Sequence record: NC_019521.1
Length of the DNA stretch: 64,000 nt
Reading direction: 5' to 3' (one strand)
The notes under the pieces are model-generated. The model worked only from the letters and a program-made list of their open reading frames with translations, made no database searches and was not told the DNA's origin. This document shows positions 25,329-59,069 of this stretch, piece by piece (the stretch's first letter is position 1; the number at the start of each line of letters is the position of its first letter). The translations under genes were made by a program, and so were the position numbers.

Positions 25329-26543
25329 ATGCCACACAGATACGAAAGACTTAAAGAAAAATTTCTTGACCCTGAGAAATTGAAAAATGTTTCTAATGAG
25401 GAGTTACAAGAAATCTATAATGAGTTTCAAGCTTTAATGATAACTTATAAGACACGACAAATGTCTGTTAAACTTTCAGCTAACTCATTATATGGAGCTT
25501 CTGGAAATCAACATTATAGATTCGCGAATTATGAAGTAGCTTCTGATATTACCGGAGAGGGTGCTTATCATATGATTGCAATTGACAAAGCATTAAACAA
25601 ATATCTAAGAGCTTGGGATAAGGATTTAGAAATACAGAAAATTCTTAAAGAAAAATTCCCAGAACAAGATTTCAAATTTGTTCCAATCGATTGCGATGTT
25701 TGTAATTACGGTGACACAGATTCAAGATATATCGAATATGGTAAGATATTCAAAGCTTGTAATTTCGTTCCAAAGAGTCATGATGATTTAATCGATTTTG
25801 TTAAATTGATGGATGTTCATCGTGTTTCTCCTTTATTCGAAAAGGTTTTAACAGCTGAAGTTACTAGAAAGAATGGTAATAGTACAATGAAAATGGAACT
25901 TGAAGTTATGGGTGGTCGTGGGATTTTCTTAGCTAAGAAAATGTATGTGATGTCTGTAATTTGGAAAGATGGTCGTAATGTTGCTAAAGCTGGAAAAATT
26001 AAAGCAACAGGTGTCGAACTTAAACGTAAGACTTCTTCATTATTTGCTAAGAAAATGCAAGAACGTGTAATTCGAGCATTGTTAACTCCAACTTTCCCAG
26101 TAAATGATGTTTATAGATTAGCTGCTGGAATAGTTCAACATGCTAAAACATTAAGTTTAGATGAACTTTGTAGAATTACTAAGGTCAGTAAATATCATGA
26201 ATTCGTTATTGATGATAAAGAAAACTTGATTCTAGCTAAAGGTTCAAGACCTCCACAAAAAGGTTCAGCTAGATGGAATCATTTACTTTACAAACATGGA
26301 GTACTTGATAAATATGAACCATTATACGATGGTCGATTAAAATGGTATCTTGCTGAAGATGGTCAACCAATGGCTATTCCATTATCTTTAGATTCAACAA
26401 CTTACCCAGATTGGTTACCTAAGATTAATCATGCTGCTCAAATCGAAGCTATCATTATCAAACCATTACAAAGATATCTTCCGGAAAATGCATCAATTTC
26501 GAATCTTGGTAAATCGGTAATTCAAAACTCATTTGGTAATTAA
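25329..26543 (+). CDS. gp43: Family B DNA polymerase, C-terminal part (motifs B and C, thumb)
   Basis: KLSANSLYG (motif B), YGDTDS (motif C), MELE, AKKMY and KATGVELKR. Confidence 0.9.
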   Translation: MPHRYERLKEKFLDPEKLKNVSNEELQEIYNEFQALMITYKTRQMSVKLSANSLYGASGNQHYRFANYEVASDITGEGAYHMIAIDKALNKYLRAWDKDLEIQKILKEKFPEQDFKFVPIDCDVCNYGDTDSRYIEYGKIFKACNFVPKSHDDLIDFVKLMDVHRVSPLFEKVLTAEVTRKNGNSTMKMELEVMGGRGIFLAKKMYVMSVIWKDGRNVAKAGKIKATGVELKRKTSSLFAKKMQERVIRALLTPTFPVNDVYRLAAGIVQHAKTLSLDELCRITKVSKYHEFVIDDKENLILAKGSRPPQKGSARWNHLLYKHGVLDKYEPLYDGRLKWYLAEDGQPMAIPLSLDSTTYPDWLPKINHAAQIEAIIIKPLQRYLPENASISNLGKSVIQNSFGN

Positions 26544-28663: not shown

Positions 28664-29470
28664 ATGAAAACTATAAGTCAATTATACGAAGGTGTATCAA
28701 ATGAATTAGTATTTAATTTTGATCAAGACTCAGAATCTGATATCATATTATTGAATACTGGTTTGAAGAAATCTGATATGTTTGATTCAGTATTTCATTT
28801 TTCTTACGAATTTACAGATAAAGCTAGTTCATCTGACAGAACTAAGTTCTTTAACGAATTTAGATTTGGTGCTAATATAAGTAAAACTGACAGTAATAGA
28901 TTTATTTCTACAGCTATATCAAGATTAGATAAAGAAATAGATTTAAGGAAATTCGACGCTATAGTTTTACCTAGATCAAGGTCTGAAATCAATTCAAGAA
29001 TGCTAAAATTCATTACTAGAACATCAAGAATTAAACCTTTCAGTTTTGAACTAGTCAAAAAACAAACATCTGACATTAATTTCGACATAGATCGATTTAC
29101 TGACGAAGTATTGAATTCGACTGTTATGATGGGTTCGAAAGAAAGACCTAGATATACCGATAAACAAAAATCTGAAGCTTTACAAAAAATGAAAAACATT
29201 ATAGATTCTGTTAGAAAGTCTGATTATTTCAGTATAGCTGAATCTATCAAAACTAATAAACTAAAAGAATATGTTGAGGAATTCTTAGAATTTGAAAACG
29301 AAGAATCTAAAAATACTTACGAAAAATTAAAAGATAAGAACATTCTAGTAATCGATGATGTTACGACAACAGGTTCTACGATAATCGAAATAATCAAAAC
29401 TTTACAAGCTGTAAACAGATCAAATAAGATAGTTATCTTTTCGTTAATAGGTAAACCAAATCTTATGTAA
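28664..29470 (+). CDS. Type I phosphoribosyltransferase-fold protein carrying the MKTISQLYE leader
   Basis: PRPP-binding loop ILVIDDVTTTGSTI plus the N-terminal shared tag. Confidence 0.75.
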   Translation: MKTISQLYEGVSNELVFNFDQDSESDIILLNTGLKKSDMFDSVFHFSYEFTDKASSSDRTKFFNEFRFGANISKTDSNRFISTAISRLDKEIDLRKFDAIVLPRSRSEINSRMLKFITRTSRIKPFSFELVKKQTSDINFDIDRFTDEVLNSTVMMGSKERPRYTDKQKSEALQKMKNIIDSVRKSDYFSIAESIKTNKLKEYVEEFLEFENEESKNTYEKLKDKNILVIDDVTTTGSTIIEIIKTLQAVNRSNKIVIFSLIGKPNLM

Positions 29471-29594: not shown

Positions 29595-30020
29595 ATGTCA
29601 ACTTTAAAACAACTTTCGAACCCACTTAAATTAAAAGGTAAATCTCACAAAGCGATTTACGATATCAATTACCAAATCAATAAAGGAATCGTAACACCTA
29701 ATAATCTTTCTGATATTACAGAAGATACTAAAGAAATCAATTTCAGATCAGGTGCTGACGATGTAAGAAATGCTACAGTTTTCGAAAATGATAGAATCGT
29801 TAGTTCTTGTGATGTAGGGCGTGGTTTATATCTTACTGAAGATGGAATAGCTTATCTTGTTTCACCTTACTGGGTTTGGGATTCACTTTTACGTGATAGT
29901 ATCAGAAATCATAACTTATCAAGAACTGAAATCCTTGAAATGGTTGAAGCTAATTGTTCAGCTAAAGGTACAATTTCTGGTAAAGTTATTACAATTACTC
30001 ACATCAATACTTCAAACTAA
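29595..30020 (+). CDS. Hypothetical early protein
   Basis: 141 aa downstream of the hairpin promoter at 29492. Confidence 0.6.
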   Translation: MSTLKQLSNPLKLKGKSHKAIYDINYQINKGIVTPNNLSDITEDTKEINFRSGADDVRNATVFENDRIVSSCDVGRGLYLTEDGIAYLVSPYWVWDSLLRDSIRNHNLSRTEILEMVEANCSAKGTISGKVITITHINTSN

Positions 30021-30538
30021 TGAAAACTTTATATAGCACACTCTTAGATGTTCTTTCAGAAACAAAAATGTTCGAACATGCTATGGACCGAAAATTCGTA
30101 CTGAACAGAATATTTAACAATAGTCAAAATCTAGTTAATCATTTATTGAAAACTATATTTTTTCCAAACGATTATTCTGTAAATCATTGGGAAGATGAAG
30201 TAGTAAATGTCATTGAAAAACATGTGATTGGTTTAGTTAAATCAAAGGTATCTGCTAAACAGTACTACGAATTTTTGATAGCGAAACAATATTCAAAAGG
30301 TAAAAACTTATCGATTGATGAGATTTATCGATTATTTAGAGTACATTTAAAAACTGAATATACTGAACAGTATATGAAAGATTTCGATTCACTTAAATCG
30401 GAATATTCTAGTATCATTTTGGAGAATCTTAAAAACTTCTTTACAGAATTATCAGAACTGTTAGAAACTAAAAACACAAAAATAACAGAATCTGAACTTG
30501 TTAACTTAACTAAGGCGTTCAATTCGATCAAGGAATAA
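30020..30538 (+). CDS. DUF29-like helical protein with variant leader MKTLYSTLLDVLSE
   Basis: NLVNHLLKTIFFP...NHWEDEV resembles the DUF29 L..HLLK....P.....W pattern. Confidence 0.45.
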   Translation: MKTLYSTLLDVLSETKMFEHAMDRKFVLNRIFNNSQNLVNHLLKTIFFPNDYSVNHWEDEVVNVIEKHVIGLVKSKVSAKQYYEFLIAKQYSKGKNLSIDEIYRLFRVHLKTEYTEQYMKDFDSLKSEYSSIILENLKNFFTELSELLETKNTKITESELVNLTKAFNSIKE

Positions 30539-38247: not shown

Positions 38248-38631
38248 ATGAAAACATTAGTTCAACTTTTCGAATCTAAAGATTATTCTAAGAACGATTT
38301 AGCTCTTATCGCTAAAGACACTATCGAAAGAATGTCTACAAAACGTTTAACTGATATCGAAGCTAAAATAAATTCGAATAACTCTTTATCTATTTCAGCT
38401 AAATCGGATGGTAAAGCTTTTAGTTTTAGTCTAAGATTTGTAGTTAAAACTAGAACGGTTAGTGATAAAGTTTCAGACTATGAGATTATCGTTATTACAG
38501 AAGGTTCGAATATCAATAGTACTAATTCGTTAAAACAATATAAGAAGTTACATGAAATGATATTCCTGAAATCTACTTTCAAGAATGAAATCACTTCAAC
38601 TGTTATCAAATCACTTCAAGGGAAATTCTAA
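38248..38631 (+). CDS. Putative capsid-internal protein (leader MKTLVQLFES)
   Basis: Shared N-terminal tag, in a late operon. Confidence 0.65.
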   Translation: MKTLVQLFESKDYSKNDLALIAKDTIERMSTKRLTDIEAKINSNNSLSISAKSDGKAFSFSLRFVVKTRTVSDKVSDYEIIVITEGSNINSTNSLKQYKKLHEMIFLKSTFKNEITSTVIKSLQGKF

Positions 38632-39029
38632 TGAAAACACTTTCGAAATTATACGAAGCTTTCGTAGAAAAAGAAATCGATACTAATTCTAATACGATAC
38701 ATAGAATAATAGCTGACGCTTTCAGAAGATGTGTATCAGTTGGTGAAATCAAGAGACTTAGAAATCTTGAAAGTTTAGAAATAGAAACTAACGGTAACGA
38801 ACATAAAGGTTTACTAGAATTCGAAGCTACAGTAAATCATGTAGAAAGAAAATTCAAAGCTCTTTATTCAGTAATCGATTCTAACGAAAGGATAAAAATA
38901 TCTATTATCATAAACCTTATAAACGAAGAAGTTTCTAGCATAAACGAAGAATTAGTAATCGAAGGAATTGACTTACAGAATCAAGTTATTCTGTTAGTTG
39001 AAAAATTATTACGTAATATAGAAATATAA
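38631..39029 (+). CDS. Putative capsid-internal protein (leader MKTLSKLYEA)
   Basis: Shared N-terminal tag. Confidence 0.65.
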   Translation: MKTLSKLYEAFVEKEIDTNSNTIHRIIADAFRRCVSVGEIKRLRNLESLEIETNGNEHKGLLEFEATVNHVERKFKALYSVIDSNERIKISIIINLINEEVSSINEELVIEGIDLQNQVILLVEKLLRNIEI

Positions 39030-39030
39030 A

Positions 39031-39696
39031 ATGAAAACAATATCAAAACTATACGAATCGAGACTTAACGAAAACTTGAATACAGAGTTATCATACTTTG
39101 CTAACGTAACTAAAGTTTCTAAAACATTTTTAGAAACTTTACCAAAAGTACAAAAAATAATAGATTCACATTATCCATCAAGTAAGTCTAAACTAATACT
39201 CGAACCATCTTTCTATACTGATTCGGTGAAAGTTTCTATAGGTAATGACAAATGGGGTTATGGATATTCATATGCTAGCAGTTATACAAAAACCCCTGAT
39301 CAGAATATGTTAGCTTTATGTTCTGAATTGTTTGATCTTAATGCTTTCGATTCTGTTGCTATAAACAATGGTACATTGAATTTATCGATCAGTTTCAATG
39401 ATTCAGCATCGTTACGAAAGAAAACTTTAGATAGTATTAAGAAATCAAAACTTGACGATTCTAAATTGAATTTTATAACACCTAGAAATCGTGATAATGT
39501 TTATCTTTATATTGACAATGTCTGGGTAAGTGCTCATATAATGGAAGAGGGTGGTTCTAAAATAAAATATGTTTTAGATAAACCTGACCCTGTAACTAAA
39601 GAAAGAGTTTTCTATGCAGACATGAAATCGTTTGTTTTTTCTGACCCATTAAAGGTTAAGAATTATGATAATGATTTAATTTTCTGGAAACCTTAA
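39031..39696 (+). CDS. Putative capsid-internal protein (leader MKTISKLYESRLNE)
   Basis: Shared N-terminal tag with a second LNE. Confidence 0.65.
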   Translation: MKTISKLYESRLNENLNTELSYFANVTKVSKTFLETLPKVQKIIDSHYPSSKSKLILEPSFYTDSVKVSIGNDKWGYGYSYASSYTKTPDQNMLALCSELFDLNAFDSVAINNGTLNLSISFNDSASLRKKTLDSIKKSKLDDSKLNFITPRNRDNVYLYIDNVWVSAHIMEEGGSKIKYVLDKPDPVTKERVFYADMKSFVFSDPLKVKNYDNDLIFWKP

Positions 39697-42517: not shown

Positions 42518-43267
42518 ATGGCTTCACTTAGAGACAGAGTTACTAGAGCTTCTAAATCAATGACTAGTACTTTCAAAGATGTAACAAAATCTATTTCAGA
42601 CTTCTTCGGAAAGTTCAAACGAATATTCCAATCATATGACTTATTCAAGGAAATAAAAAATCATCCTTGGAATGGACCACAGGGTCGTATACAAGCCTAT
42701 GACTGGTATCGTAAATATCGTAAAGATAAAAAGAACTGGCTTAAGGGTCAATTAATGAAACAAGGTCAATTATATATGTTCGATTACGTCGATCCTAAAT
42801 ACAAAGACGTTTTACCTTGGTTCGATGAGAATCCGTTGGTTATTTCATTAGGTCCTGTAAAAACCTCACTAGGTTGGAGAACGATCAACATAAACTTACA
42901 TTTATTACCACCGATTACTAGAAAGATAGTAATGTCAAAGATATTCGATTTCAATAAGAATCGTTATAAAGCTTTGATGGGTGTAAATAATCCTAAAGCT
43001 ATTCCTAGCGTTAATTACAAATCGTTAATACAGCCTTTAGAGCAGTATGGAATAGGTTTCGCAATTCGTATGTACATTCCTGAATTACAAAAGAACATTG
43101 TAGAATTTCAGTTAGAAGAATGGAAAAATGCAATATTCTTAGAATCCAGAAAATTGAACGGAATTACAGCTCCTAAACTTCAACAAGAATGGGAAACTTT
43201 CGTTGAAGAACATAACAAAAAGAAATCGACTAAACAGAAACTAAGAAAAAATTGGTTCGGATCATAA
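42518..43267 (+). CDS. gp2: DNA end protector protein (T4 gp2-like)
   Basis: GQLYMFDYVDPKYKDVLPWFDENPLVI and INLHLLPP. Late box at 42494. Confidence 0.85.
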   Translation: MASLRDRVTRASKSMTSTFKDVTKSISDFFGKFKRIFQSYDLFKEIKNHPWNGPQGRIQAYDWYRKYRKDKKNWLKGQLMKQGQLYMFDYVDPKYKDVLPWFDENPLVISLGPVKTSLGWRTININLHLLPPITRKIVMSKIFDFNKNRYKALMGVNNPKAIPSVNYKSLIQPLEQYGIGFAIRMYIPELQKNIVEFQLEEWKNAIFLESRKLNGITAPKLQQEWETFVEEHNKKKSTKQKLRKNWFGS

Positions 43268-43276
43268 ATCAAAGAA

Positions 43277-43528
43277 ATGAAAGAAACATTCAACACTAAA
43301 GACGCAACAGGTAAAGAAATTGTAATCGGTGAGAAATATGGATATTCTCAATCAACTAACGGTTATTCAGATGTTAGAATCGGTATAGCTAAATCTTTCA
43401 CACCGAAAGGATTACTGACATTAACGGAAGTAAAAGCTACAAGATCTCTGTACAACGATGAAGCTATTGAAACTGGTCATAAAGGTACTTGTTCAGTTAA
43501 ACCTTCTATGTTATTCAAAATCGTTTAA
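43277..43528 (+). CDS. Hypothetical protein
   Basis: 83 aa. DATGKEIVIGEKYGY is a common small phage beta-barrel start. Confidence 0.6.
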   Translation: MKETFNTKDATGKEIVIGEKYGYSQSTNGYSDVRIGIAKSFTPKGLLTLTEVKATRSLYNDEAIETGHKGTCSVKPSMLFKIV

Positions 43529-44025
43529 TGCGAAATCTAATCTATACTGGAATCGGGAGTCGAGAAACTCCCGATTTAGTTTTGTCAATTATGTCTAAGA
43601 TAGCAAAATTCTTAGAAACTAAAGGTTATACTGTTAGAAGTGGTGGTGCTCCTGGAGCTGACTTAGCTTTCGATATCGATATAACTAATAAAGAAATCTA
43701 TTTACCTTGGTATCGTTTTAATGATAACAATTCTAAACTATTCAAGCTTACTAATGAAGCTAGAGAAATAGCTGAGAAGTTTCACCCAGCTTGGAATAAA
43801 CTATCAGAAGCTGCTAGAAAACTAATGACTAGAAATGTTTATCAAGTATTGGGTTTCGATCTTAAATCACCTACTAATTTTATTATATGTTGGACGAAGG
43901 ATGGTAAGGCATCACGAGGTACTGGACAAGCGTTAAGAATCGCAAAATATTATAATATACCAGTTTATAATCTGTTTAATCAGAGTGATCGAAATGATCT
44001 TAAAATGAAACTTAGTATGATGTAA
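43528..44025 (+). CDS. SLOG/DprA-like Rossmann-fold protein
   Basis: YTGIGSRETP, RSGGAPGAD, EIYLPW, RNVYQVLG, GTGQALRIA. Confidence 0.8.
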   Translation: MRNLIYTGIGSRETPDLVLSIMSKIAKFLETKGYTVRSGGAPGADLAFDIDITNKEIYLPWYRFNDNNSKLFKLTNEAREIAEKFHPAWNKLSEAARKLMTRNVYQVLGFDLKSPTNFIICWTKDGKASRGTGQALRIAKYYNIPVYNLFNQSDRNDLKMKLSMM

Positions 44026-44031
44026 TACATA
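44024..44031 (+). promoter_or_regulatory. Late promoter box AATACATA
   Basis: Heads five consecutive tagged genes. Confidence 0.7.
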
Positions 44032-44050
44032 TTTCTAAATATCTTAAATA

Positions 44051-44512
44051 ATGAAATCACTTACAAACTTATACGAAAATAAGCTTAACGAAGCTTCAGG
44101 AACTTTTAGCTCTTTGGAATCTAATATGAATTCTTCTATAGATTCTGTAAAGAATCATATTGATTCGGAATTAAAGGAGCTTTTAGCTAAACAATCTAAA
44201 ATAAAGGATGCTAAATCTAAGACTGCTAAAGCTATTAAAGTAATTGAAAATGTTCTTCCAGAATTTACAGAATTACATGCAACTTATAAGATCATGACAT
44301 TCAATGACAGTATTTGCATAGAATTTACTATTCCTAGTGAAATAATGAATGACAAAACTTCGAATATAAAGAAAGATGTTGTTTATTTCAATAATTTCAT
44401 TAAAGCTAATAAATCGGAACTGGATAAAACTTTTAGTTTTGCTGGTGTAACTAGATATAATTCAGAATTCTCCGGAAATAGCTATAGTGATTTAATACTA
44501 GTTCTTAAATAA
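44051..44512 (+). CDS. Putative capsid-internal protein (leader MKSLTNLYENKLNE)
   Basis: Shared tag, first gene after late box 44024. Confidence 0.65.
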   Translation: MKSLTNLYENKLNEASGTFSSLESNMNSSIDSVKNHIDSELKELLAKQSKIKDAKSKTAKAIKVIENVLPEFTELHATYKIMTFNDSICIEFTIPSEIMNDKTSNIKKDVVYFNNFIKANKSELDKTFSFAGVTRYNSEFSGNSYSDLILVLK

Positions 44513-44520
44513 TTTAAATA

Positions 44521-44796
44521 ATGAAATCACTTACGAAATTATACGAATCTAAACTTAACGAAAGTGAGGAAATCGACAAAGTAAAAATGAAACAGGCTTT
44601 GGTTACTTTTCAGAAGTCTAACGATCTAATAAAACTTGAAAAAGACTTACTAGCACTTAATCCATATAAAAACGGTATACAATACAATGCTTATATTGAC
44701 TGGATTAATGACAATATCAAATGGTATAAGAACGGTGATACTTATGTATTTTCTTTAACAAGCTCCGGATCGGTTCTTAATTCGTTAGACGATTAA
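44521..44796 (+). CDS. Putative capsid-internal protein (leader MKSLTKLYESKLNE)
   Basis: Shared tag. Confidence 0.65.
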   Translation: MKSLTKLYESKLNESEEIDKVKMKQALVTFQKSNDLIKLEKDLLALNPYKNGIQYNAYIDWINDNIKWYKNGDTYVFSLTSSGSVLNSLDD

Positions 44797-44799
44797 ATT

Positions 44800-45426
44800 A
44801 TGAAAACTCTTACTTCCCTACTATTCGAATCTTACAATTCTGACATAAGGAAACTTGAGTTAAAGCTTCAGTCTTTTGGTTATACTGTTCGACATGATAC
44901 AAGTAGACCAAAAGGCTTTGCTTTAGAAATTAGATTACCTAAGGATCAGTTATATGTACCTGAGGATTTAGAAATACTTTCTAAGAACTTGGAAGCTTAT
45001 CCTAATCTTTTAATGATCGATGCTAAAGTCGGGGAAGATAAGAATTACGTAGATTTCATCTTTCCAGTAACAGAAAGATTCGTTGATAAAGTTTATCATG
45101 TAACTTCTAAGAAATGGATAGAATCGATAACTGAAAAAGGTTTATTATGTTCTAGACCTACTGATGCTTCTGATAACATTAAGAAACATGAATCAAAAGA
45201 ATCTTTCAGAGATAGAAAATACAAAGCTGTTTTCGTAATATCGAATTTAGAAGACGCTAAGAAAGTTTCTAAGATGTTCGACTTCGAAGAACCTCAACTT
45301 ATCGAATTAGATACAAAGAATCTTAAATTTTTCGAAGATCCAATGATGCCTGAAGAAATGGATTCATTAGTTCATTTCGATGACATAGAACCAAAAAGAA
45401 TAATTAACATAACTGACATTAAATAA
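44800..45426 (+). CDS. Tagged protein with ADP-ribosyltransferase/Tpt1-like domain (leader MKTLTSLLFES)
   Basis: VYHVTSKKWIESITEKGLL, VFVISNLEDA, LIELDT, FEDP, DIEPKRI follow the ART-fold layout. Confidence 0.55.
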   Translation: MKTLTSLLFESYNSDIRKLELKLQSFGYTVRHDTSRPKGFALEIRLPKDQLYVPEDLEILSKNLEAYPNLLMIDAKVGEDKNYVDFIFPVTERFVDKVYHVTSKKWIESITEKGLLCSRPTDASDNIKKHESKESFRDRKYKAVFVISNLEDAKKVSKMFDFEEPQLIELDTKNLKFFEDPMMPEEMDSLVHFDDIEPKRIINITDIK

Positions 45427-45428
45427 AC

Positions 45429-45806
45429 ATGAAAACAATATCAAAATTATACGAAGCTAGTTCGGATTTCCAAATGATAGAATTCGAATCGATTAAAGCT
45501 ATAGAATTAGCTATAGCTAACTATTCAGCCTCGGTTAAGGGCTTACAACAAGAAGTAACAAGCATTAAGAATCATTTATCAAAAATACTTGGAAACAAAG
45601 TATCAGACATTAAAGATCTGAATGCTTCTTTAACTGCTGAAAAAGGTATTACGTACATAGAGGTACAACTTCAAGCTGATAAAGTTGAAAAATTTGGAAT
45701 GGAGGAAAGTAAAGCCTTTTCAAAAGTTTTACAAGCTAAAGGCATTACTAAACATAAAACCCAATTTGTCGGAACTAGTTCAATGTACATTACATTATAT
45801 TTCTAA
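45429..45806 (+). CDS. Putative capsid-internal protein (leader MKTISKLYEA)
   Basis: Shared tag. Confidence 0.65.
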   Translation: MKTISKLYEASSDFQMIEFESIKAIELAIANYSASVKGLQQEVTSIKNHLSKILGNKVSDIKDLNASLTAEKGITYIEVQLQADKVEKFGMEESKAFSKVLQAKGITKHKTQFVGTSSMYITLYF

Positions 45807-45808
45807 AC

Positions 45809-46180
45809 ATGAAAACTCTATCAAAACTATTCGAAGATCAAATCTTTAACGTTTCTTCAGTTTCTCAGTACTATCGAGAAAATATAGATTTACTGTTACC
45901 AGCTAAAGAAGTTCTTGACGAAAAGGATATTCAAATAGCTAAAGATAGAATTCTGAAAGAAAAAGAAGTTTTACCTAAGGGTCATAAGTATCTTATGATT
46001 AATGAAGCTCAGACATTAATGTTTATGGTTCTAGAACTTCAAGGTTCTAGATATCATGCAGTTCTTACAAGTGATACTGAGAGTACTGTATTTCAGACAT
46101 TAATAAACTGGGAACATGTTGAAGAATATGTCAAAGCTTTAGGATTAGATTTCGATTATTTCAAAGAATCGAAACTGTAA
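45809..46180 (+). CDS. Putative capsid-internal protein (leader MKTLSKLFED)
   Basis: Shared tag. Confidence 0.65.
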   Translation: MKTLSKLFEDQIFNVSSVSQYYRENIDLLLPAKEVLDEKDIQIAKDRILKEKEVLPKGHKYLMINEAQTLMFMVLELQGSRYHAVLTSDTESTVFQTLINWEHVEEYVKALGLDFDYFKESKL

Positions 46181-46193
46181 CATCAAATACATG

Positions 46194-46231
46194 AACAAAA
46201 ACCCGTTAGATCGATCTAACGGGTTTTTGTT
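46194..46231. terminator. 38-bp perfect palindrome / bidirectional terminator
   Basis: AACAAAAACCCGTTAGATC|GATCTAACGGGTTTTTGTT. Confidence 0.75.
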
Positions 46232-46295: not shown

Positions 46296-48050
46296 ATGTT
46301 AGGTTACAATAGAAACGCAGGTAGACCCAATTCTGGGAATCTATCAAAGAAATTCAGTAAATTAGGACCGATTATCAAATCGATTGGTAACTTCGGTATC
46401 GTCATAAATAAGAAAGTTCTTGACAAAAAGACTGCTATACCTGAAGACCCAAGATTAGAAGGTGACATTTATTCGATTCTTGATACGATTGGAACTCGTT
46501 CAATGAATCAAACTTCATATCCTCAATATAATCAAAACGATCAAGTACAAAGACAAGCTAGACGTTGGCATTTAATTACAATGTCTAAACATCCAGAACT
46601 TGAAGATATTATTGAAACGTTAACTGATGAAGCTATTGTATATGATAAGAATGCTACTTACTGCTGTTCTGCTATTCTAAATACTTTGATGTTAGACGAA
46701 AAGATAATTAGTTCTAAAGATTCTAAAGACCTTGAAGAATTAGTTACAGAAAAGTTCCCAGCTTTATATAGAATGTTAGGTCTTTATAAATCTGGTGCTA
46801 AATCTTTGATGCAAGAATGGTTAGTTGAAGGTAAGAAAGCTTGGGAGATTGTATACGATTCATTAGATAATCCTAAATCGATTATAGGTTTAGTTCCGAT
46901 AGACCCATTATCATTAATTGAACATTGGGATGAAGATGGTAACAGATGGTGGATTCAGGAACCAAATCTTACTCAACAATCTAGTGCTATGGGTGTTACT
47001 AGAGCTATGGGTGGTCAAAGAACATTACATGACTCACAGGTAATATATTGGGATTGGGACCCAACAGGATTTAAGTTTTCTTATCTTGAAAGACTTTTAA
47101 GAACGTTTAATGTTTACCGAGCTATCGAAAGAATGAAAGTTAACTGGTGGGTTATGAACTCTCAGTTTAGAACTATGATCGTTATTCCAACTCATGGTAA
47201 ATCTAGACAACGCGCTGCTGAGGTATTAGCTGCAGCAATGCAAAGATATCGAGATCATGTTGAATTCTCTGATGAAGATGGAACGGTTAAAGTAAATGGT
47301 TCAGCGAACATTCCAGCGAATAAGGAATATTGGTTAGCTGATACTTCGTCTGGAAAACCTGAAGTTTCTACAGTAGGGGGTGACGGATATGACTTGTCAA
47401 GTGCTGATACTTCATGGTCTAAACGAAATCTGTTAGAACTTTCTAAAGTACCTTTGGATAGATTCGACCCTAGTTCTTCAGAATCATGGAATCTTGACCC
47501 AACATCTTCAAGACGTCAAGAATTGAAATTCGCTAAGTTTGTCCAAACGTTAAGAACTTCAATGTCTGAGATAATGCTAAAACCTCTGATTATTCAAATA
47601 TGTTTAGATCGCCCTAATCTGACAAATAATTACGAATTACTTGATGCGATTACTATAGATTTCTTATCTGAAAACATCTTTACTCAAAAGATCGAAATGG
47701 AAATCATGAAAGAACGTACTGAATTCATTGGTGAAATGATGGACAAGCTTAAACGTGTTGACGCTGACGGTAACGAAAAACCTTTCTTCTCTTTGAAATT
47801 CTTGATGGACAAATACATGATGTTAACTCCTGAAGAACTTGAACAAAATGCGAAAGCTCTTAAAGAAGAGGAAAAGGAAATGGAAGAATTCAGTAGAAAA
47901 CAGAATACAATTTCAGCTGAAATGGAAGCTGAGAAAGCTGAATATACAAAAGAATTCGAAGAAGATGATTCTAAATCTTTATACGAATCTATAAAGGCTA
48001 AAAGAATCAAACGGAAAACAACAAAAGACATTACAAAATACAGAATATAA
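46296..48050 (+). CDS. gp20: Portal protein (T4 gp20-like)
   Basis: HPELEDIIETLTDEAIV, WLVEGK, SYLERLLRTFN, KEYWL, EVSTVGG, QELKFAKFVQTLR. Late box at 46264. Confidence 0.9.
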   Translation: MLGYNRNAGRPNSGNLSKKFSKLGPIIKSIGNFGIVINKKVLDKKTAIPEDPRLEGDIYSILDTIGTRSMNQTSYPQYNQNDQVQRQARRWHLITMSKHPELEDIIETLTDEAIVYDKNATYCCSAILNTLMLDEKIISSKDSKDLEELVTEKFPALYRMLGLYKSGAKSLMQEWLVEGKKAWEIVYDSLDNPKSIIGLVPIDPLSLIEHWDEDGNRWWIQEPNLTQQSSAMGVTRAMGGQRTLHDSQVIYWDWDPTGFKFSYLERLLRTFNVYRAIERMKVNWWVMNSQFRTMIVIPTHGKSRQRAAEVLAAAMQRYRDHVEFSDEDGTVKVNGSANIPANKEYWLADTSSGKPEVSTVGGDGYDLSSADTSWSKRNLLELSKVPLDRFDPSSSESWNLDPTSSRRQELKFAKFVQTLRTSMSEIMLKPLIIQICLDRPNLTNNYELLDAITIDFLSENIFTQKIEMEIMKERTEFIGEMMDKLKRVDADGNEKPFFSLKFLMDKYMMLTPEELEQNAKALKEEEKEMEEFSRKQNTISAEMEAEKAEYTKEFEEDDSKSLYESIKAKRIKRKTTKDITKYRI

Positions 48051-48718: not shown

Positions 48719-48916
48719 ATGAAAACATTAACACAATTATATGAATCTGTAATCGATGATTCGGATAAAGAATTTTTGAAATCGGAATTGAAACATATCG
48801 ATAATCAAATAGATAAGCTTATGAAGTTATCAAAGATATCTGATAAACAACAAGCTTATTGGGATAAGCTAGAGCTTGATAAAAATGAAATTATAGAACT
48901 ATTGAAAACAAAATGA
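48719..48916 (+). CDS. Putative capsid-internal protein (leader MKTLTQLYES)
   Basis: Shared tag, 65 aa, helical hairpin-like. Confidence 0.65.
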   Translation: MKTLTQLYESVIDDSDKEFLKSELKHIDNQIDKLMKLSKISDKQQAYWDKLELDKNEIIELLKTK

Positions 48917-49383
48917 AAACGTTAGTTCAACTATTCGAAGACTTATCACTCGATGTATCTAAAGCGATACGTCGAGAACTTGATACAAATTTCAAAGGGT
49001 TTCGTAAACATCAGAATCGTCATGATATCGAAGCTTTAATTGGTGATGCTATGAGAAACTCAGCTTTACCTTTTATAAGACATGCAGCTGAATACGTAAC
49101 TCCTGATAAATTCAAATCTGGTAAGCATATTAATTCTGGATATTGTGTTCAATTCGCTGAGTATATTTTAGATCATGTTCATTCTCGTAACGTTAAGATG
49201 ATGGGTGATGTCGATCATCATGTAATGTTGAAAGACAACGTAACAGGTCTTTATTATGACGCTGAGCATCCAGATGGTATAACTTTAGAAGATTTCCGTA
49301 ATACTACATGGATGAAAAATCCTGACAAAGTTGTACAGTTCTTAAGAAACAAAGAAGTTAAGGAAATTGATTACATGCAATAA
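48913..49383 (+). CDS. Tagged protein with possible Cys-His-Asp (papain/transglutaminase-like) triad (leader MKTLVQLFED)
   Basis: INSGYCVQFA...HHVML...YYDAEHPDG. Confidence 0.45.
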   Translation: MKTLVQLFEDLSLDVSKAIRRELDTNFKGFRKHQNRHDIEALIGDAMRNSALPFIRHAAEYVTPDKFKSGKHINSGYCVQFAEYILDHVHSRNVKMMGDVDHHVMLKDNVTGLYYDAEHPDGITLEDFRNTTWMKNPDKVVQFLRNKEVKEIDYMQ

Positions 49384-49407: not shown

Positions 49408-50148
49408 ATGAAAAATATATCCATAATATCAAGTATTGACAAACGTTCAATGCTTTTCGAAGCTGTAAGTGACGGATTAATACCAGTACCTGATGGTATG
49501 ATGCGTGTTTCTGGAGTAATAGCTAAGATGGACGTTATGAATAATAACGGACGTTTTTATACTAAAGAAAACTATACAAAACATATTGATTCTATTCAGG
49601 ATAAAATCGCTACCGGTCTTTATGGAGAAATGGAACATCCTGATAGCTTTAATATCAATTATAATAACGTTTCTCATAAAGTTGAAAAACTTTGGTATGA
49701 TCATGCTACCGATGAAGTCAAAGGTATATTTCTACTTTTAGATAACGAAAAAGGTAAAACTGCTCAAGCTATTGTTAAATCTGGTGGTACTCTTAGATGT
49801 TCTACTAGATGTGCTGGTGATGTAGCGAAAGGTAATGAAGCTCGTATAAGTAAATTCTATACAGTCGATTTAGTCGGTACTCCTGGATTCGATGAAGCTA
49901 AATTATTCTTGATGGAATCTTTAGATTTTACATCTAAATCAAATAGTTCAGATATTAAACTTTTGAATGAAGATGATAACAGTATTGTATATGTTTCAGA
50001 ACTTAAACAAATGCTTTTAGAATCTAAGAAATATGTAACTAACGATTCAGCTTTATTAGAAGCTTTAAATGAAAGAACTAATCTAGTTTCTTCGAAGGAA
50101 TCTAAGAAGCTTTATGAATCTATTAAATCGAAAATACTTAAACGATAA
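49408..50148 (+). CDS. gp21: Prohead protease (T4 gp21-like)
   Basis: NNNGRFY, YGEMEHPD, VSHKV, GKTAQAIV..G..L.CSTR, DLVGTPGF. Confidence 0.9.
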   Translation: MKNISIISSIDKRSMLFEAVSDGLIPVPDGMMRVSGVIAKMDVMNNNGRFYTKENYTKHIDSIQDKIATGLYGEMEHPDSFNINYNNVSHKVEKLWYDHATDEVKGIFLLLDNEKGKTAQAIVKSGGTLRCSTRCAGDVAKGNEARISKFYTVDLVGTPGFDEAKLFLMESLDFTSKSNSSDIKLLNEDDNSIVYVSELKQMLLESKKYVTNDSALLEALNERTNLVSSKESKKLYESIKSKILKR

Positions 50149-50150
50149 AA

Positions 50151-50984
50151 ATGAAAACATTAACACAATTATATGAAGCTATAGTTATATCTAAAGATTA
50201 TCCTAAATTTGATTCGTCTAATAAAGATATCGAAAAATATCTTCTAAATATTGCAAACGAATTAAAGAAATCTGAAGGTTTTAACAAATATAGAGGGGTT
50301 TACGATTTTAAAAGCAGATATAACTACGGACAAGGAATAATAGATCATACTGTAATACTCGAATGGTCTGCACCATTATCAGAATGTTTTAAATCTTTAG
50401 GTGTATCTAAATCTGAAGCTATATTGATTTCAGATTTAGGTAAGAATGCTGAAAAGCTAACAACTATCAAATTTAAATTACAGGTACATATTCGTGAAAA
50501 AATATCATCTGATCAAACTATCGATAAATTTGAAAACTATTACAGTGGTACTTTAGACGCTACTATTTATAATCATAATTTCAGTAGAATAGTTTCGTAT
50601 ATGTCTGGATATTATTCTGGTGGTTCTGATGATAAGTATACTTACGATAGAACACAAGAAAGCTTTGATAAGTCTGATAGAATTTTCGATTTAATAAATT
50701 TCGTAACTAGTAATATCAACGCTTATAATAAAGAATACAATCCAGTTTTGATATCATCTAACAGTTCTATTCTTAGTAATGAAGCTTCTTCAGTTTATTC
50801 TAGAATATCAAAAAATAAAACTGACAATTTATACGACTTTACGGATTTTATTAAGAAACATGGTGAAGCTAAACTTTTAAATCTATTAAAGAAATCTTCA
50901 ACGTTTAAAGCTTTCTTAGATAAGGATCATTATAAAGATGGTATCTTATCGAAAACTTCTATCTGGTCAGAAACATACGATTAA
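50151..50984 (+). CDS. Putative capsid-internal protein (leader MKTLTQLYEA)
   Basis: Shared tag, directly after the protease gene. Confidence 0.65.
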   Translation: MKTLTQLYEAIVISKDYPKFDSSNKDIEKYLLNIANELKKSEGFNKYRGVYDFKSRYNYGQGIIDHTVILEWSAPLSECFKSLGVSKSEAILISDLGKNAEKLTTIKFKLQVHIREKISSDQTIDKFENYYSGTLDATIYNHNFSRIVSYMSGYYSGGSDDKYTYDRTQESFDKSDRIFDLINFVTSNINAYNKEYNPVLISSNSSILSNEASSVYSRISKNKTDNLYDFTDFIKKHGEAKLLNLLKKSSTFKAFLDKDHYKDGILSKTSIWSETYD

Positions 50985-50993
50985 ACTATAAAA

Positions 50994-51305
50994 ATGAAAA
51001 CGATAAATCAATTATACGAAGCTAAGCTTAATGAAGCTTATGGTACAGAACATCTCGAAGATCAAAATGCTGAATTAGGTGCATTAGTTAAAGACTTAAA
51101 GGATGTAAAAGTTGGGAAAACTTACTGCATTGTAGATTTAGGTTTAGAGGAATGGAATTCTGGATATAAACTTAAAGCGATAAAAGGTAATATGTACATC
51201 TTTGACGATTTACTAGGTTCTCCTTTAGATAAAGAAGTTTTCGAATTTACTAGAGGTGACATTTTAGAATTAATATATGACAAAGCTATAGCTTTCGAAA
51301 AATAA
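50994..51305 (+). CDS. Putative capsid-internal protein (leader MKTINQLYEAKLNE)
   Basis: Shared tag. Confidence 0.65.
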   Translation: MKTINQLYEAKLNEAYGTEHLEDQNAELGALVKDLKDVKVGKTYCIVDLGLEEWNSGYKLKAIKGNMYIFDDLLGSPLDKEVFEFTRGDILELIYDKAIAFEK

Positions 51306-51312
51306 AAACAAA

Positions 51313-51735
51313 ATGAAAACAATATCAAAATTATACGAAGCTAAATTAAATGAAGCTTCAAACTATGATCCATACGAATGGGGTGAAACTGTAATGAAGG
51401 CTGTTAAATCGTTAGCTTCATCTTTGAAACTTAAAGATATTAAAATCCATGAAGCTCATTCTGATGATGGCGAAGGTTACGGTCATGGTATAATCGATTT
51501 TAAGAAAGATGGTGTACCATATTATATCGATTATCATATAACTCTTGAATTACATCATGGACTAGAATTAGGTGATTTAGAAATCCAATTAGGTGTTTAT
51601 GAAGATTCTGATGAACCATATGCACCAAATGATGACGTTGATAAAACTTTCAAGAAAGTTTCTGGTCAAGACGAACCAAAGGTTATTTCGAAAATGGTAA
51701 CAGATTTCTTGAAATCTACTAAAGTTTTGAAATAA
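51313..51735 (+). CDS. Putative capsid-internal protein (leader MKTISKLYEAKLNE)
   Basis: Shared tag, acidic body. Confidence 0.65.
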   Translation: MKTISKLYEAKLNEASNYDPYEWGETVMKAVKSLASSLKLKDIKIHEAHSDDGEGYGHGIIDFKKDGVPYYIDYHITLELHHGLELGDLEIQLGVYEDSDEPYAPNDDVDKTFKKVSGQDEPKVISKMVTDFLKSTKVLK

Positions 51736-52914: not shown

Positions 52915-54672
52915 ATGTCTTTTAAATATACTAGGATTAATCCTGCACAAGCCCAGAAAAAATGGGGTGCTAAATTAAACGAATCTTTCGAGTCTATCAA
53001 AACTCTTCCAGGTTTTGCTAACAAGATGAATATGATTTCGAAACTTGCTGCTATTAAGGAACTTAATGACGGTGGAGTTAACAAGGGAGAACGTGCTCTT
53101 ATGGAGAACTATCAAATCTCTGGAACTGGTGATATTCTTGGAATGGGTCCATCTACATGGCCTTCTGATCCAGGTACTGCTCCAGGAAATGAAGAAGGTG
53201 CTTGGACTAAACCAACCTACAAAAAAGGTTCTGGTGATGTTCCTTCAATGATCTTCGGATTAGCGATGAACGTTGCTGCTTACACTGTAGGTTTCGATAT
53301 CGTTCACACTATTCCAGTTGATACTCCGACAGCAGCTTTCCAATTCTTGGATTCTATTTACGCTGGTGGTAAACTTAACGAAGCTGGAAATCCTCCTTCT
53401 TACATGAAAGTAAGTTCAGTTAAACTTCGTGCTGGATTCGATTACAGTACTTTGGTTAAAGGTGGTCATGTATTCTTCAAAACTAAAGGAGATGATACTG
53501 CAGTTCATGGTATTTTCATGGGTAAATCGTTCTTCGATGGTGGTTTAATGATCAAACTTGAATCTACTGGTACTATCGCTACTAACGTTTATACTAAAAC
53601 TGATGCTATCTCTGTAGCTGATGTATTTACTGACGCTGGTGTTGAAGTAATTCCTGGTTCTTCTGCTACTGCAGTTGATGGTACTGCTTTAGATATCGAA
53701 GTTGCACAAGCTGAATACGTTGAATCTTTCCGTGAACATGTACAAGGTTTCACTAACAGTGACCAAATTACTCCACGTTCTATGGATAGAGCAACAGGTG
53801 AGCAAGGAACTCGTTCAGTATTGAACTTACGTTTATGGTCAACTTCTTTGGAAATGCGTACAGTTGAAGTACTTGCTGATATCACTAAAACTCAGTTGAA
53901 AGACTTAAGTGCATATGGTATCGATGGTGTTGCTCAGTTGTACAAAGCTTCTCAAAACGAATTGATTCAGTCAATTAACGATGAGATCATAACTGAATTC
54001 ACTCGTTTAGGTGTTACTAACCACGCTCAATTATTCGCAGCTCAAAACTTGAACTTGAACTTATTTATCGCTCCTGCTGGAACAGCTAATAAGCCTTTGA
54101 CTCAGTTTAACTACGGAGAATTCAAAGACGTTCAAGGTGTTGATCGTGCAGCTGAATTTGGTAATATCATAAACGCTGAGAATAACTCTGCAGCAGAAAA
54201 TACTTACACTCGTCAACGTAGAATTTACTCTCGTTTATTAGCCGCTTCAGCTATTATCGGTACAATTTCTCGTTACGGTTCTGGTGATGTTGCGGTAGTT
54301 GGTCCACAAACAGCAGTTGCGTTACAAGATTCTAAATCTTTCACTGCAGTTCCAATGGAAAACAACTTAGGTTCAACAGCTGATTTACATTACATTGGTA
54401 ACGTAAATGGTATCCGTATCTATGTTAACCCTAAATGGTCATGGGATGATAAACGTATATCTGTTGGACGTCAAGGTCAAGACGATCAACCAGGTTTGAA
54501 ATTCTTTGCTTACGATTTAGCTAGCTCTGTAGAGGTTATCGATTCTTCTACTTACGCTCCTAAAATCTGTGTTACTTCACGTTTCGCAGTTCAAGCATGT
54601 GGTTTCCATCCTGAGGCTTCTTACTTAACTTTCGTTGTCAACTCCGATTTCGGTGGTGATACTTGGGTATAA
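52915..54672 (+). CDS. gp23: Major capsid protein (T4 gp23-like)
   Basis: 585 aa with VAAYTVGFDIV, TPTAAFQFL, QSINDEII, NGIRIYVNP, SRFAV. Late box at 52866 and a strong terminator after it. Confidence 0.9.
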   Translation: MSFKYTRINPAQAQKKWGAKLNESFESIKTLPGFANKMNMISKLAAIKELNDGGVNKGERALMENYQISGTGDILGMGPSTWPSDPGTAPGNEEGAWTKPTYKKGSGDVPSMIFGLAMNVAAYTVGFDIVHTIPVDTPTAAFQFLDSIYAGGKLNEAGNPPSYMKVSSVKLRAGFDYSTLVKGGHVFFKTKGDDTAVHGIFMGKSFFDGGLMIKLESTGTIATNVYTKTDAISVADVFTDAGVEVIPGSSATAVDGTALDIEVAQAEYVESFREHVQGFTNSDQITPRSMDRATGEQGTRSVLNLRLWSTSLEMRTVEVLADITKTQLKDLSAYGIDGVAQLYKASQNELIQSINDEIITEFTRLGVTNHAQLFAAQNLNLNLFIAPAGTANKPLTQFNYGEFKDVQGVDRAAEFGNIINAENNSAAENTYTRQRRIYSRLLAASAIIGTISRYGSGDVAVVGPQTAVALQDSKSFTAVPMENNLGSTADLHYIGNVNGIRIYVNPKWSWDDKRISVGRQGQDDQPGLKFFAYDLASSVEVIDSSTYAPKICVTSRFAVQACGFHPEASYLTFVVNSDFGGDTWV

Positions 54673-58267: not shown

Positions 58268-58268
58268 T

Positions 58269-58276
58269 AATACATA
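58269..58276 (+). promoter_or_regulatory. Late promoter box AATACATA
   Basis: Leader nearly identical to that at 44024. Confidence 0.65.
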
Positions 58277-58294
58277 TTCTTAAATATCTTAAAA

Positions 58295-58537
58295 ATGAAA
58301 ACGTTAACACAATTATACGAAGCTGAAGAAATTCCAGCAAAAAGAAAATTCTTTGTAAGTCAAAGAGGTGTTGCTGACTTTAAGAAAGATTTGAAGATGA
58401 ACGGTATGAAATATGAAGAACTTAAAGGTAACAATTTCATACTTGATAATTCAAATCCTGGTAAGGTAAACATGGCTGTAAAAATGGTAAGGGAACGTGT
58501 AGGTTCTCAAAATATCAAAGAAAAATTCGATTTTTAA
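58295..58537 (+). CDS. Putative capsid-internal protein (leader MKTLTQLYEA)
   Basis: Shared tag, with its own late box at 58269. Confidence 0.65.
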   Translation: MKTLTQLYEAEEIPAKRKFFVSQRGVADFKKDLKMNGMKYEELKGNNFILDNSNPGKVNMAVKMVRERVGSQNIKEKFDF

Positions 58538-58883: not shown

Positions 58884-59069
58884 ATGAAAACATTAAAGTC
58901 AATGTTCGAGTCAATCATCAAGGATGATATGTCTCCGATATATGATAAAGCTAAAGACAAATCATATAACAAGAAAACAAATGACAATTCTGAAATGTCA
59001 CCAACTTATGACAAAGTTAAAGCTGGTAAGAACAAATCAGACGATTACGAAATGTCACCAACTAAATAA
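58884..59069 (+). CDS. Tagged repeat micro-protein (leader MKTLKSMFES)
   Basis: (D/E)MSP(I/T)(YD)K repeated three times. Confidence 0.55.
   Translation: MKTLKSMFESIIKDDMSPIYDKAKDKSYNKKTNDNSEMSPTYDKVKAGKNKSDDYEMSPTK

Follow-up and report, generated by a model that had tools for sequence, protein, structure and literature searches.

The DNA analysed here, a 64-kb stretch referred to below as the window, covers record positions 62001-126000 of Sphingomonas phage PAU (NC_019521). PAU is a jumbo myovirus with a 219-kb genome of 32% G+C, and its host strain HER1398 is in fact a Sphingobacterium, a member of the Bacteroidota (PMC3738902). The subject of this analysis is the open reading frame (ORF) at window positions 44800-45426, which is 100% identical to PAU gp144 (YP_007006751; NC_019521 106800-107426) and which GenBank gives neither a product name nor a note. 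On balance, with a little more confidence than doubt, we read gp144 as a prohead-targeted internal head protein that carries a divergent ADP-ribosyltransferase (ART)-fold enzyme as its cargo. The elements of gp144 on which this reading is built are, in window coordinates:

44800 to 45426, plus strand: the gp144 ORF, 208 amino acids plus stop, with an ATG start; precursor of 24.5 kDa with an isoelectric point (pI) of 5.4.
44800 to 44829, plus strand: the tag, or predicted propeptide, MKTLTSLLFE (residues 1-10), with a predicted prohead-protease cut after Glu10 (Leu8-Phe9-Glu10/Ser11).
44830 to 45075, plus strand: the N-lobe (residues 11-92), an alpha-beta-beta-alpha-beta-beta two-layer sandwich, modelled with a mean predicted local distance difference test score (pLDDT) of 91.8.
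45076 to 45423, plus strand: the C-lobe (residues 93-208), with a predicted ART fold closest to the nicotinamide adenine dinucleotide (NAD+) lobe of Tpt1/KptA.
45097 to 45105, plus strand: His100-Val-Thr102, an H-x-[ST] motif on strand beta1 that aligns with YHGT of Tpt1 and FHFT of DarT1.
45220 to 45234, plus strand: Tyr141-Lys-Ala-Val-Phe145, on or beside beta2, with Tyr141 and Phe145 invariant in the family.
45337 to 45339, plus strand: Asp180, the sole invariant acidic residue of the family, in an [aromatic]-x-D-P context at the end of beta4 and the start of the loop to beta5.
45361 to 45363, plus strand: Asp188, which aligns with DarT1 Glu152, the catalytic Glu characteristic of ARTs.

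An exhaustive search of 1.84 billion protein cluster representatives (E <= 0.001) returned 19 proteins, namely 18 phage-sized relatives (192-256 residues) and one 1440-residue repeat protein (E 5.6e-4). The 18 phage-sized relatives together with gp144 make up the 19-member family alignment referred to throughout. Identity to gp144 ranges from 22 to 58%, and the representatives are all unnamed and mostly metagenomic. Word-indexed protein searches recovered just 2 and 7 proteins, and tblastn against 50,697 GenBank phage records detected no relative besides PAU itself. Likewise, gp144 matched nothing above threshold in Pfam, PHROGs, NCBIfam or PADLOC; the sole match of phmmer against PDB sequences, to a YopM repeat, was dismissed as spurious. 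As judged from sequence, gp144 belongs to an undescribed and rare ART-fold family without a Pfam model, and one that is patchy among T4-like phages.

The AlphaFold2 model built with the 19-sequence alignment (pLDDT 86.7; predicted template modelling score 0.80) has two lobes and is of low confidence only at residues 1-8 and 125-128, the latter in an 18-residue insertion relative to Tpt1 (residues 118-135) that is itself poorly modelled. Structure prediction followed by Foldseek was the check proposed for the ART-like fold suggested in a first-pass annotation of this DNA, and the outcome bears that suggestion out. In the PDB as well as among Swiss-Prot models, Tpt1/KptA proteins take every top place (E 2e-4 to 1e-3, probability 1.00), followed by DarT1, pertussis toxin S1, the Rhs toxin TreX and cholera toxin A. 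Global template modelling (TM) scores are low (0.33-0.40) because the two lobes differ in orientation. When the C-lobe alone was compared with the ESM Atlas, TM-scores of 0.62-0.74 were obtained to PTS_2-RNA, DarT, DUF952 and Tad6 clusters. Matching BFVD viral models are uncharacterised phage proteins, phage DarT and phage KptA-like proteins, while the AlphaFold cluster library gave uncharacterised proteins and RNA 2'-phosphotransferase, DUF952 and RES entries. Among the language-model neighbours of the C-lobe, Arr-ms accounts for 64 of 100 named matches (score 0.94), and PARP, Tox-ART-HYD1, Exotoxin A and ART-PolyVal also appear.

Profile comparisons point in the same direction. The family profile run against 177,635 PDB sequences gave matches to DarT1 (E 1.8e-4) as well as to several KptA structures (E 2.8e-4 to 0.1), and hhalign against E. 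coli KptA plus six phage KptAs gave E 5.8e-6 with a probability of 85% over 51 columns. Scans of the individual members with Pfam, NCBIfam and PADLOC models gave weak scores; the models matched by more than one member were ART models only (DUF7002, PTS_2-RNA and DarT), and PARP was matched by one member. The NAD+-binding split beta-sheet core of the ART superfamily is present in the gp144 model, and we hold with high confidence, on the modelled structure, that the C-lobe has the ART fold.

Conservation is concentrated in this lobe. The invariant columns of the alignment (H100, I110, G114, Y141, F145, D180 and I201) all lie within it, whereas no column of the N-lobe alignment is invariant. The first-pass annotation had described a tagged ART/Tpt1-like protein by a series of short motifs, and every one of these is found in the order given: the tag (residues 1-10), YHVT (99-102), ESITEKGL (108-115), VFVISNLEDA (144-153), LIELDT (167-172), FEDP (178-181) and DIEPKRI (195-201). 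That the motifs are non-random is indicated by the invariant residues of the family, which fall inside them. For the N-lobe, three structure searches returned no specific relative and only generic alpha/beta sandwiches: de novo designs, an S6 permutant, HAD caps, the FtsK alpha domain and histidine-kinase CA domains. The N-lobe is presumably a target-recognition or packing module.

Which parts of the Tpt1 active site are kept? His100 is invariant (19/19), and position 102 is Thr in 12 of the 19 members, Ser in one, and Ala, Cys or Val in the rest. In the alignment, V-Y-H100-V-T102 falls on L-Y-H-G-T of Tpt1, and Ile110 and Gly114 match an Ile and a Gly that Tpt1 conserves in its helix 1. Hydrogen bonds to the 2'-OH of the ADP-ribose are made by His101 and Thr103 in the Tpt1 of Clostridium thermocellum, and the equivalent of Ile111 is needed for full Tpt1 function, as the RslTpt1 I109A variant is temperature-sensitive in yeast complementation (PMC6333775). 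Because His100-x-Thr102 and Ile110 align with these ADP-ribose contacts, the elements that hold NAD+ are retained in gp144. At the second motif, Y-K-A-V-F of gp144 was aligned with Y-V-H-L-S of Tpt1 by eye, outside the hhalign stretch; on this alignment, Ala143 would stand in for the second His of the H-H-h motif, and the third position would be kept hydrophobic, as Leu190.

The candidates for the catalytic acid are Asp180 and Asp188, which lie eight residues apart. The pairing of Asp188 with DarT1 Glu152 comes from a weak second segment of the DarT1 alignment (the structure, PDB 8BAQ, is that of the DarT1 E152A mutant; PMC11543638), and the Asp188 column is acidic in eight of the 19 members, including gp144 and its two closest relatives. 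The His-Tyr-Asp pattern (His100, Tyr141 and Asp188 or Asp180), as assigned by alignment, recalls Arr (H19-Y49-D84) and the phage anti-CRISPR protein AcrIF11 (H-H-D), minimal ARTs in which Asp replaces the catalytic Glu (PMC8120803). We judge the chances that gp144 is catalytically active to be even or slightly better.

The same data bear on the idea that gp144 is an ordinary cytoplasmic phage KptA/Tpt1 that removes or caps RNA phosphates in tRNA repair, a role put forward for the KptA genes that other jumbo phages carry, and that its N-terminal likeness to other PAU proteins is unrelated to packaging. As noted, every one of the nearest solved structures and Swiss-Prot models is a Tpt1/KptA; the size is similar, the two-lobe plan with a boundary near residue 90 is shared, and the hhalign alignment crosses the lobe junction. 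KptA is moreover found in many jumbo phages (PMC9503650). Against this stands the chemistry. The Arg-His-Arg-Arg tetrad, indispensable to all Tpt1 enzymes (PMC6333775), is missing from gp144: KptA Arg80 (I-R-A-V-Q-G-H-S) aligns with Asp74 (I-D-A-K-V-G-E-D), the position of E. coli KptA Arg125 corresponds to Arg119/Pro120 and is not conserved in the family, and neither the N-lobe alignment nor the full alignment contains an invariant Arg or His in the N-lobe. Nor is the N-lobe the winged-helix RNA lobe of Tpt1, since the fold searches make it an alpha/beta sandwich. The Tpt1 models of Pfam and NCBIfam give no match to gp144, and four or five members match PTS_2-RNA or PRK00819 at E 0.004-0.02, the best for Pfam PTS_2-RNA being 0.015, short of its threshold. 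Finally, gp144 lies among tagged head proteins and not among RNA-repair genes. We regard this explanation as highly improbable, and a genuine Tpt1/KptA (PF01885) was rejected on the missing tetrad and the fold of the N-lobe; the second-motif residue also appears to differ in the alignment made by eye. In addition, the invariant Asp180 has no counterpart in Tpt1, and gp144 bears a capsid tag. The label "Tpt1-like" used in the first-pass annotation therefore holds for the fold and for the NAD-binding His-x-Thr and Ile, and fails for the tetrad and the winged-helix lobe. With the tetrad missing, the least likely reaction is one of Tpt1 type in which an RNA or DNA phosphate makes the attack, and a protein side chain, nucleobase or hydroxyl is a likelier acceptor; the earlier list of possible targets (protein, RNA ends or DNA) is narrowed to that extent, the missing RNA lobe also disfavouring Tpt1-type RNA-phosphate chemistry.

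Two other assignments within the superfamily were tried. Membership of DarT (PF14487) is not supported, and the scores are weak (PADLOC DarT at E 0.003 in five members; NCBIfam toxin_DarT at E 0.055 in one). The structural match of DarT1/DarT2 to gp144 is weaker than that of Tpt1, equivalents of Arg52, Asp54 and Met71 were not identified in gp144, and the neighbours gp143, gp145 and gp146 match neither Macro nor NADAR models, i.e., neither a DarG macrodomain nor a NADAR antitoxin is present there. DarT is also a host defence toxin, whereas gp144 is a proposed virion cargo. An Alt-like R-S-E ART (Alt/VIP2) was rejected on the His instead of Arg on beta1, the lack of an E-x-E motif and the lack of any sequence match to those families.

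A packaged and ejected gp144 might also be without catalytic activity, its ART lobe serving as an inhibitor or sponge that binds NAD+, immune signals derived from ADP-ribose, or a defence protein of the host, much as phage anti-Thoeris proteins bind ThsB or sequester signals. In favour of this, a viral Tad6 cluster is similar to the C-lobe (TM 0.67 by query; 0.53 for the whole protein), and Tad3-6 are anti-Thoeris proteins whose action is to bind ThsB and is not catalytic (PMC13728456). Across the family, conservation is lacking at the canonical Glu position, and the Tpt1 tetrad is absent. On the other hand, 19 divergent members keep active-site-like residues (the H-x-T on beta1, the aromatic pair at beta2 and the Asp before beta5), and Pfam Tad6 is unmatched at E <= 1. 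A sponge would need to be abundant, and head cargo amounts to tens or hundreds of copies, to go by T4 copy numbers. We consider a non-catalytic binder unlikely, while giving it some weight.

The second line of evidence for a packaged enzyme comes from the N-terminus. PAU ORFs of at least 60 residues, taken from the whole genome, were scored for the pattern MK[TSG][LI]xx[LM]x?[YFL]E. It begins 20 of 292 plus-strand ORFs and none of 61 minus-strand ORFs, and it occurs internally three times among 64,181 positions. Residue shuffles gave a mean of 0.005 N-terminal matches, so the tag that had been noticed at the start of gp144 stands as a shared feature of 20 PAU ORFs. About 15 of the tagged ORFs fall inside the window, in the following regions:

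38248 to 39696; 44051 to 46180; 48719 to 49383; 50151 to 51735; 58295 to 58537; 58884 to 59069: regions with tagged ORFs.

The PAU tags (MK[TS][LI]xxL[YF]E) are often extended to ..[AS]KLNE[AS], with a second L-x-E, and the tags of other PAU proteins end in LYE, LFE or LNE. Codons differ synonymously from tag to tag (TTA/CTT/CTA; ACA/ACT/ACG) with the peptide constant, and selection therefore acts on the peptide, not on a DNA repeat. Among the carriers are the scaffold gp152, gp149 and gp150 (at the position of T4 gp67/gp68), and gp142, gp154, gp199 and gp270; the last four are four of the five proteins noted as "internal capsid protein" in GenBank. The fifth, gp70, lacks the tag. In NC_019521, structural notes stand on gp1, gp9, gp10, gp70, gp142, gp154, gp199 and gp270, with wording that includes "internal capsid vertex protein (mango)", "capsid decoration protein (banana)" and "internal capsid protein"; gp1 carries such a note and is yet named RNA polymerase sigma factor. 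These notes imply unpublished structural or proteomic work.

The likeness to T4 extends position by position. T4 internal proteins (IPs) IPII and IPIII start with MKTYQEFIAE/A (read from the T4 record) and gp144 with MKTLTSLLFE/S; the two are of equal length, both open with MKT and have Glu at position 10, positions 4, 7 and 8 are hydrophobic in each, and position 11 is occupied by a small residue. In the T4 capsid targeting sequence, residues 4 and 7 serve targeting and residues 8 and 10 processing (PMC9026906), and the first ten residues are enough for foreign proteins to be packaged into heads and passed on from there to the next cell (PMC9026906, PMC5694885). The T4 prohead protease gp21 cleaves after Glu (PMC9026906, PMC5694885). 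The end of the gp144 tag, Leu8-Phe9-Glu10/Ser11, fits an [L/I]-x-E gp21-type site, and PAU encodes a gp21-family protease, gp151, whose Peptidase_S77 gene lies about 4 kb downstream of gp144. By analogy, gp151 is presumed to be the enzyme that removes the tag, leaving a predicted mature protein of 198 residues, 23.3 kDa and pI 5.4. In 16 of the 19 family members, [LIV]-x-E is present at the column of Leu8-Phe9-Glu10. The distant relatives, which are encoded on contigs of other T4-like phages (with gp32, gp15 and topoisomerase II as neighbours), bear the tag of their own phage: on contig L009, five ORFs, the gp144 relative included, start with MKH.KLF..F.NE or a close variant. From this analogy and the distribution among PAU proteins, the tag of gp144 is probably, with good confidence, a capsid address with a cleavage site of the T4 type.

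Several further observations concern tags and cleavage sites. L-x-E sequences occur near the N-termini of the major capsid protein gp156 (..WGAKLNE/SF, around residue 23) and of the protease gp151 itself (..RSMLFE/AV, around residue 19), and both are kept in the related contig L002; this suggests short propeptides that are cut by the same protease. Local tag families in metagenomic T4-like phages (MKH.KLF..F.NE, MKDMQSFNEFIGE and MKHIKEYLQFINE; L009 9649-12442 and 20401-20675, L010 4423-5160) resemble T4 MKTYQEFIAE even more closely than the PAU tag does. In PAU, gp116 (window 30020-30538, plus strand) and its paralogue gp39 (record 25530-26063) start with MKTLYSTLLD and MKSLYNMFLD, with Asp at position 10. 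In T4 IPIII, Asp at position 10 blocks processing and still allows capsid targeting (PMC9026906), and by analogy gp116 and gp39 might be packaged uncleaved. A second tagged enzyme-like protein is gp114 (window 28664-29470, plus strand; 268 residues), which starts with MKTISQLYE; its C-terminal part is phosphoribosyltransferase-like (Pribosyltran E 1e-5 and PRTase_2 3.5e-5, both just under the cut-off, with a weak PDB match to HGPRT), and it is possibly another packaged enzyme.

Could the shared N-terminus be something other than an address, i.e., a translation or mRNA signal, or a generic helix for assembly or scaffold interaction, with gp144 acting late in the infected cell and never delivered? 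It begins at the start codon, some of the tagged genes share upstream DNA as well, and gp144 does not have the "internal capsid protein" note in GenBank. Synonymous codon variation with the peptide kept argues otherwise, as do the gp21-type L-x-E end, the position-by-position match to the T4 capsid targeting sequence, the presence of the tag on the scaffold and on all but one of the five annotated internal capsid proteins, and the fact that homologues elsewhere bear the tags of their own phages. An explanation of this kind seems to us quite unlikely. That gp144 itself is packaged and ejected is somewhat more likely than not.

The genes around gp144 fit a head protein. From gp139 to the major capsid protein, the block is tightly packed on the same strand; the start of gp144 lies 3 nt past the stop of the ORF before it, and the ORF that follows begins 2 nt past the gp144 stop. 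The neighbouring features, in window coordinates, are:

42518 to 43267, plus strand: gp139, homologous to gp2, the DNA-end protector of T4 (phrog_429, E 2e-36), just upstream of the gp144 block.
43528 to 44025, plus strand: gp141, DprA-like (phrog_768, E 3e-61), also just upstream of the gp144 block.
44051 to 44796, plus strand: gp142 and gp143, tagged, upstream of gp144, starting with MKSLTNLYENKLNE.. and MKSLTKLYESKLNE..; gp142 is an "internal capsid protein" in GenBank.
45429 to 46180, plus strand: gp145 and gp146, tagged, downstream of gp144.
46194 to 46231, strandless: a perfect 38-nt palindrome that separates gp146 from the portal gene and is made up of an A-tract, a GC-rich stem and a T-tract.
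46296 to 48050, plus strand: the portal protein gp147 (Pfam Portal_T4, E 4e-88).
Between the portal gp147 and the protease gp151: gp148 to gp150, with gp149/gp150 at the T4 gp67/gp68 position.
49408 to 50148, plus strand: the prohead protease gp151 (Pfam Peptidase_S77, the T4 gp21 family; 39.9 bits against a cut-off of 27).
50151 to 50984, plus strand: the scaffold gp152, with the same tag (MKTLTQLYEA..).
Following the scaffold gp152 and preceding the major capsid protein: gp153 to gp155.
52915 to 54672 of the window: the major capsid protein gp156.

Linkage between a gp2 homologue and the gp144 homologue is seen in each of the three phages whose gene context could be read (PAU; L002 658-2570; L004 696-2666). 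The sole neighbour kept beside a gp144 homologue in a related metagenomic phage is gp146 (L002 3805-4176; 36% identity), while gp143 and gp145 are not conserved there. With only gp146 kept, the gp144 cluster is a variable cassette, comparable to the internal-protein loci of T4. A conserved partner or immunity gene for gp144 was considered and rejected: gp143 is not conserved in the close relative, and gp146, which is conserved, has neither a recognisable family nor a solved relative in family and structure searches. The product of gp146 (45809-46180, plus strand) is tagged, has 123 residues and ends in ..ESKL.

The letters of the palindrome at 46194-46231 are AACAAAAACCCGTTAGATC followed by GATCTAACGGGTTTTTGTT, and by its sequence it looks like a bidirectional intrinsic terminator at the end of the gp142-gp146 block, ahead of the portal gene. 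The start codons of the tagged genes gp142 and gp164 are directly preceded by a 26-nt motif, TAATACATATTTCTAAATATCTTAAA (44023-44048 and 58268-58293, plus strand), with two matches within three mismatches where none is expected; a looser copy at 44493-44518 precedes gp143. To judge from its placement, the motif may be a late promoter or leader element of PAU. Sigma-70-like sites were not enriched (42 against 54 expected), in a scan that is ill-suited to a Bacteroidota host.

The tag on scaffold and core proteins raises the possibility that gp144 is a structural or scaffold part of the prohead core with a relic ART fold, degraded or expelled like T4 gp22, gp67 and gp68. The same tag is indeed carried by the scaffold and by the proteins at the gp67/gp68 position, and gp144 is acidic (pI 5.4), unlike the basic T4 internal proteins. 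However, gp144 is well folded into two domains, and its invariant residues are confined to the NAD-binding C-lobe, which would be unexpected in a disposable scaffold; it also contains a single internal L-x-E beyond the tag (Leu167-Ile168-Glu169), located in a predicted beta strand. The patchy distribution of the family among T4-like phages is, moreover, that of accessory internal proteins and not of core scaffold parts. A disposable core part is, in our view, very unlikely.

Under the reading that we prefer, an internal head protein with an ART-fold enzyme as its cargo, gp144 would be expressed with the head genes from the tight, same-strand, tagged gp142-146 block beside the portal gene. The 10-residue tag MKTLTSLLFE would direct the protein into the assembling scaffold core, as the T4 targeting sequence does, and gp151 would then cleave after Leu8-Phe9-Glu10 to leave a 23-kDa two-lobed gp144 in the DNA-filled head. 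Upon infection, gp144 would be ejected with the DNA into the Sphingobacterium host. There, the C-lobe is expected to bind NAD+ as the NAD+ lobe of Tpt1/KptA does, on the basis of the fold and the conserved His100-x-Thr102 and Ile110, and gp144 may transfer ADP-ribose onto some molecule of the host, for which Asp180 and/or Asp188 would act as catalytic acid in the manner of Asp84 in Arr. The poorly conserved N-lobe would pick the target.

Several points weigh against this reading. Every sequence match to a named ART family is below the curated threshold, and the canonical catalytic position is acidic in only eight of the 19 members. An ART fold can also be a non-catalytic binding module, as illustrated by Tad6, a structural neighbour of the C-lobe that acts by binding ThsB. 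GenBank flags five other internal capsid proteins and not gp144, which may therefore be absent from the virion or present at low copy. Furthermore, the homologues of gp144 in distant phages are not located beside head genes.

A bolder extension, which we think unlikely to hold in full, is that gp144 founds a family of virion-delivered ARTs in which the NAD+ lobe of Tpt1/KptA was kept, the RNA lobe was swapped for a target lobe, and the tetrad was replaced by Asp chemistry. Its substrate would belong to a class new for phage cargo and would be modified on DNA entry; it could be a nucleobase, an immune protein of the host, or even the termini of the PAU genome itself, this final option being suggested by the linkage to the gp2 DNA-end protector in PAU and two relatives. 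The extension would also include an ejected proteome of some 20 proteins, readable from the PAU tag, with a second enzyme-like cargo.

The known or predicted head-packaged ARTs are nearly all of the Alt/VIP2 type or fused to large head proteins. If our reading is true, gp144 is a compact, free-standing head-packaged ART from an old Tpt1/KptA-like branch with a 10-residue cleavable tag. An active gp144 would mean a new pairing of enzyme and target, for host takeover or for counter-defence, in a little-studied Bacteroidota host, and would show that the Tpt1 NAD+ lobe was re-used after the loss of RNA chemistry. An inactive one would still illustrate cleanly the re-use of an ART fold as cargo of the virion. 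The predicted head cargo of PAU appears to be listable from the sequence tag alone. A head-packaged ART is in principle unsurprising to phage biologists, and gp144 is a concrete new candidate cargo enzyme. As far as its sequence indicates, it fits a known delivery principle; what is new is the free-standing form, the undescribed family, the Tpt1/KptA-like origin and the short tag.

The closest functional precedent is T4 Alt, which the first-pass annotation had named as a packaged and injected ART, in agreement with the literature (PMC9026906, PMC8120803). Alt is packaged in the head, processed by gp21, present in about 40 copies and ejected with the DNA (PMC9026906), and it modifies proteins of the host, for example RNA polymerase's alpha subunit (PMC8120803). 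It shares with gp144 the ART superfamily, a short N-terminal propeptide, gp21-type processing and the proposed logic of delivery. However, Alt is a 682-residue R-S-E (cholera-toxin-type) enzyme, whereas gp144 has 208 residues, belongs to a His-type lineage nearest Tpt1/KptA and shows no detectable sequence relationship to it. The Alt propeptide (MELITEL..) is also unlike the IPII/IPIII-type tag that gp144 resembles. With the T4 internal proteins, gp144 shares a 10-residue N-terminal address common to unrelated proteins of one phage and genes in variable clusters; those proteins are small, basic and non-enzymatic (IPI inhibits a restriction enzyme), whereas gp144 is acidic and has an enzyme fold. 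Unlike the tag of the T4 internal proteins, the PAU tag is also found on scaffold and core proteins, on about 20 proteins in all.

Among the minimal ARTs, AcrIF11 is an example of a small phage ART able to disable a defence protein of the host. However, gp144 does not match Pfam Arr-ms, and neither Arr nor AcrIF11 is among its top structural matches. Phage KptA genes have been interpreted as encoding RNA-repair enzymes (PMC9503650). Head-packaged ARTs are predicted to be common in myoviruses on the grounds of MuF, portal and polyvalent fusions and head-gene neighbourhoods (PMC9503650). The MuF-fused and polyvalent ARTs (Iyer et al. 2022) have in common with gp144 that an ART is placed in the virion and deployed at injection. 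They are known, though, by fusion or by Alt-like context and belong to the Alt/VIP2, N4-ART or ART-PolyVal families, whereas gp144 is free-standing and carries a short cleavable tag.

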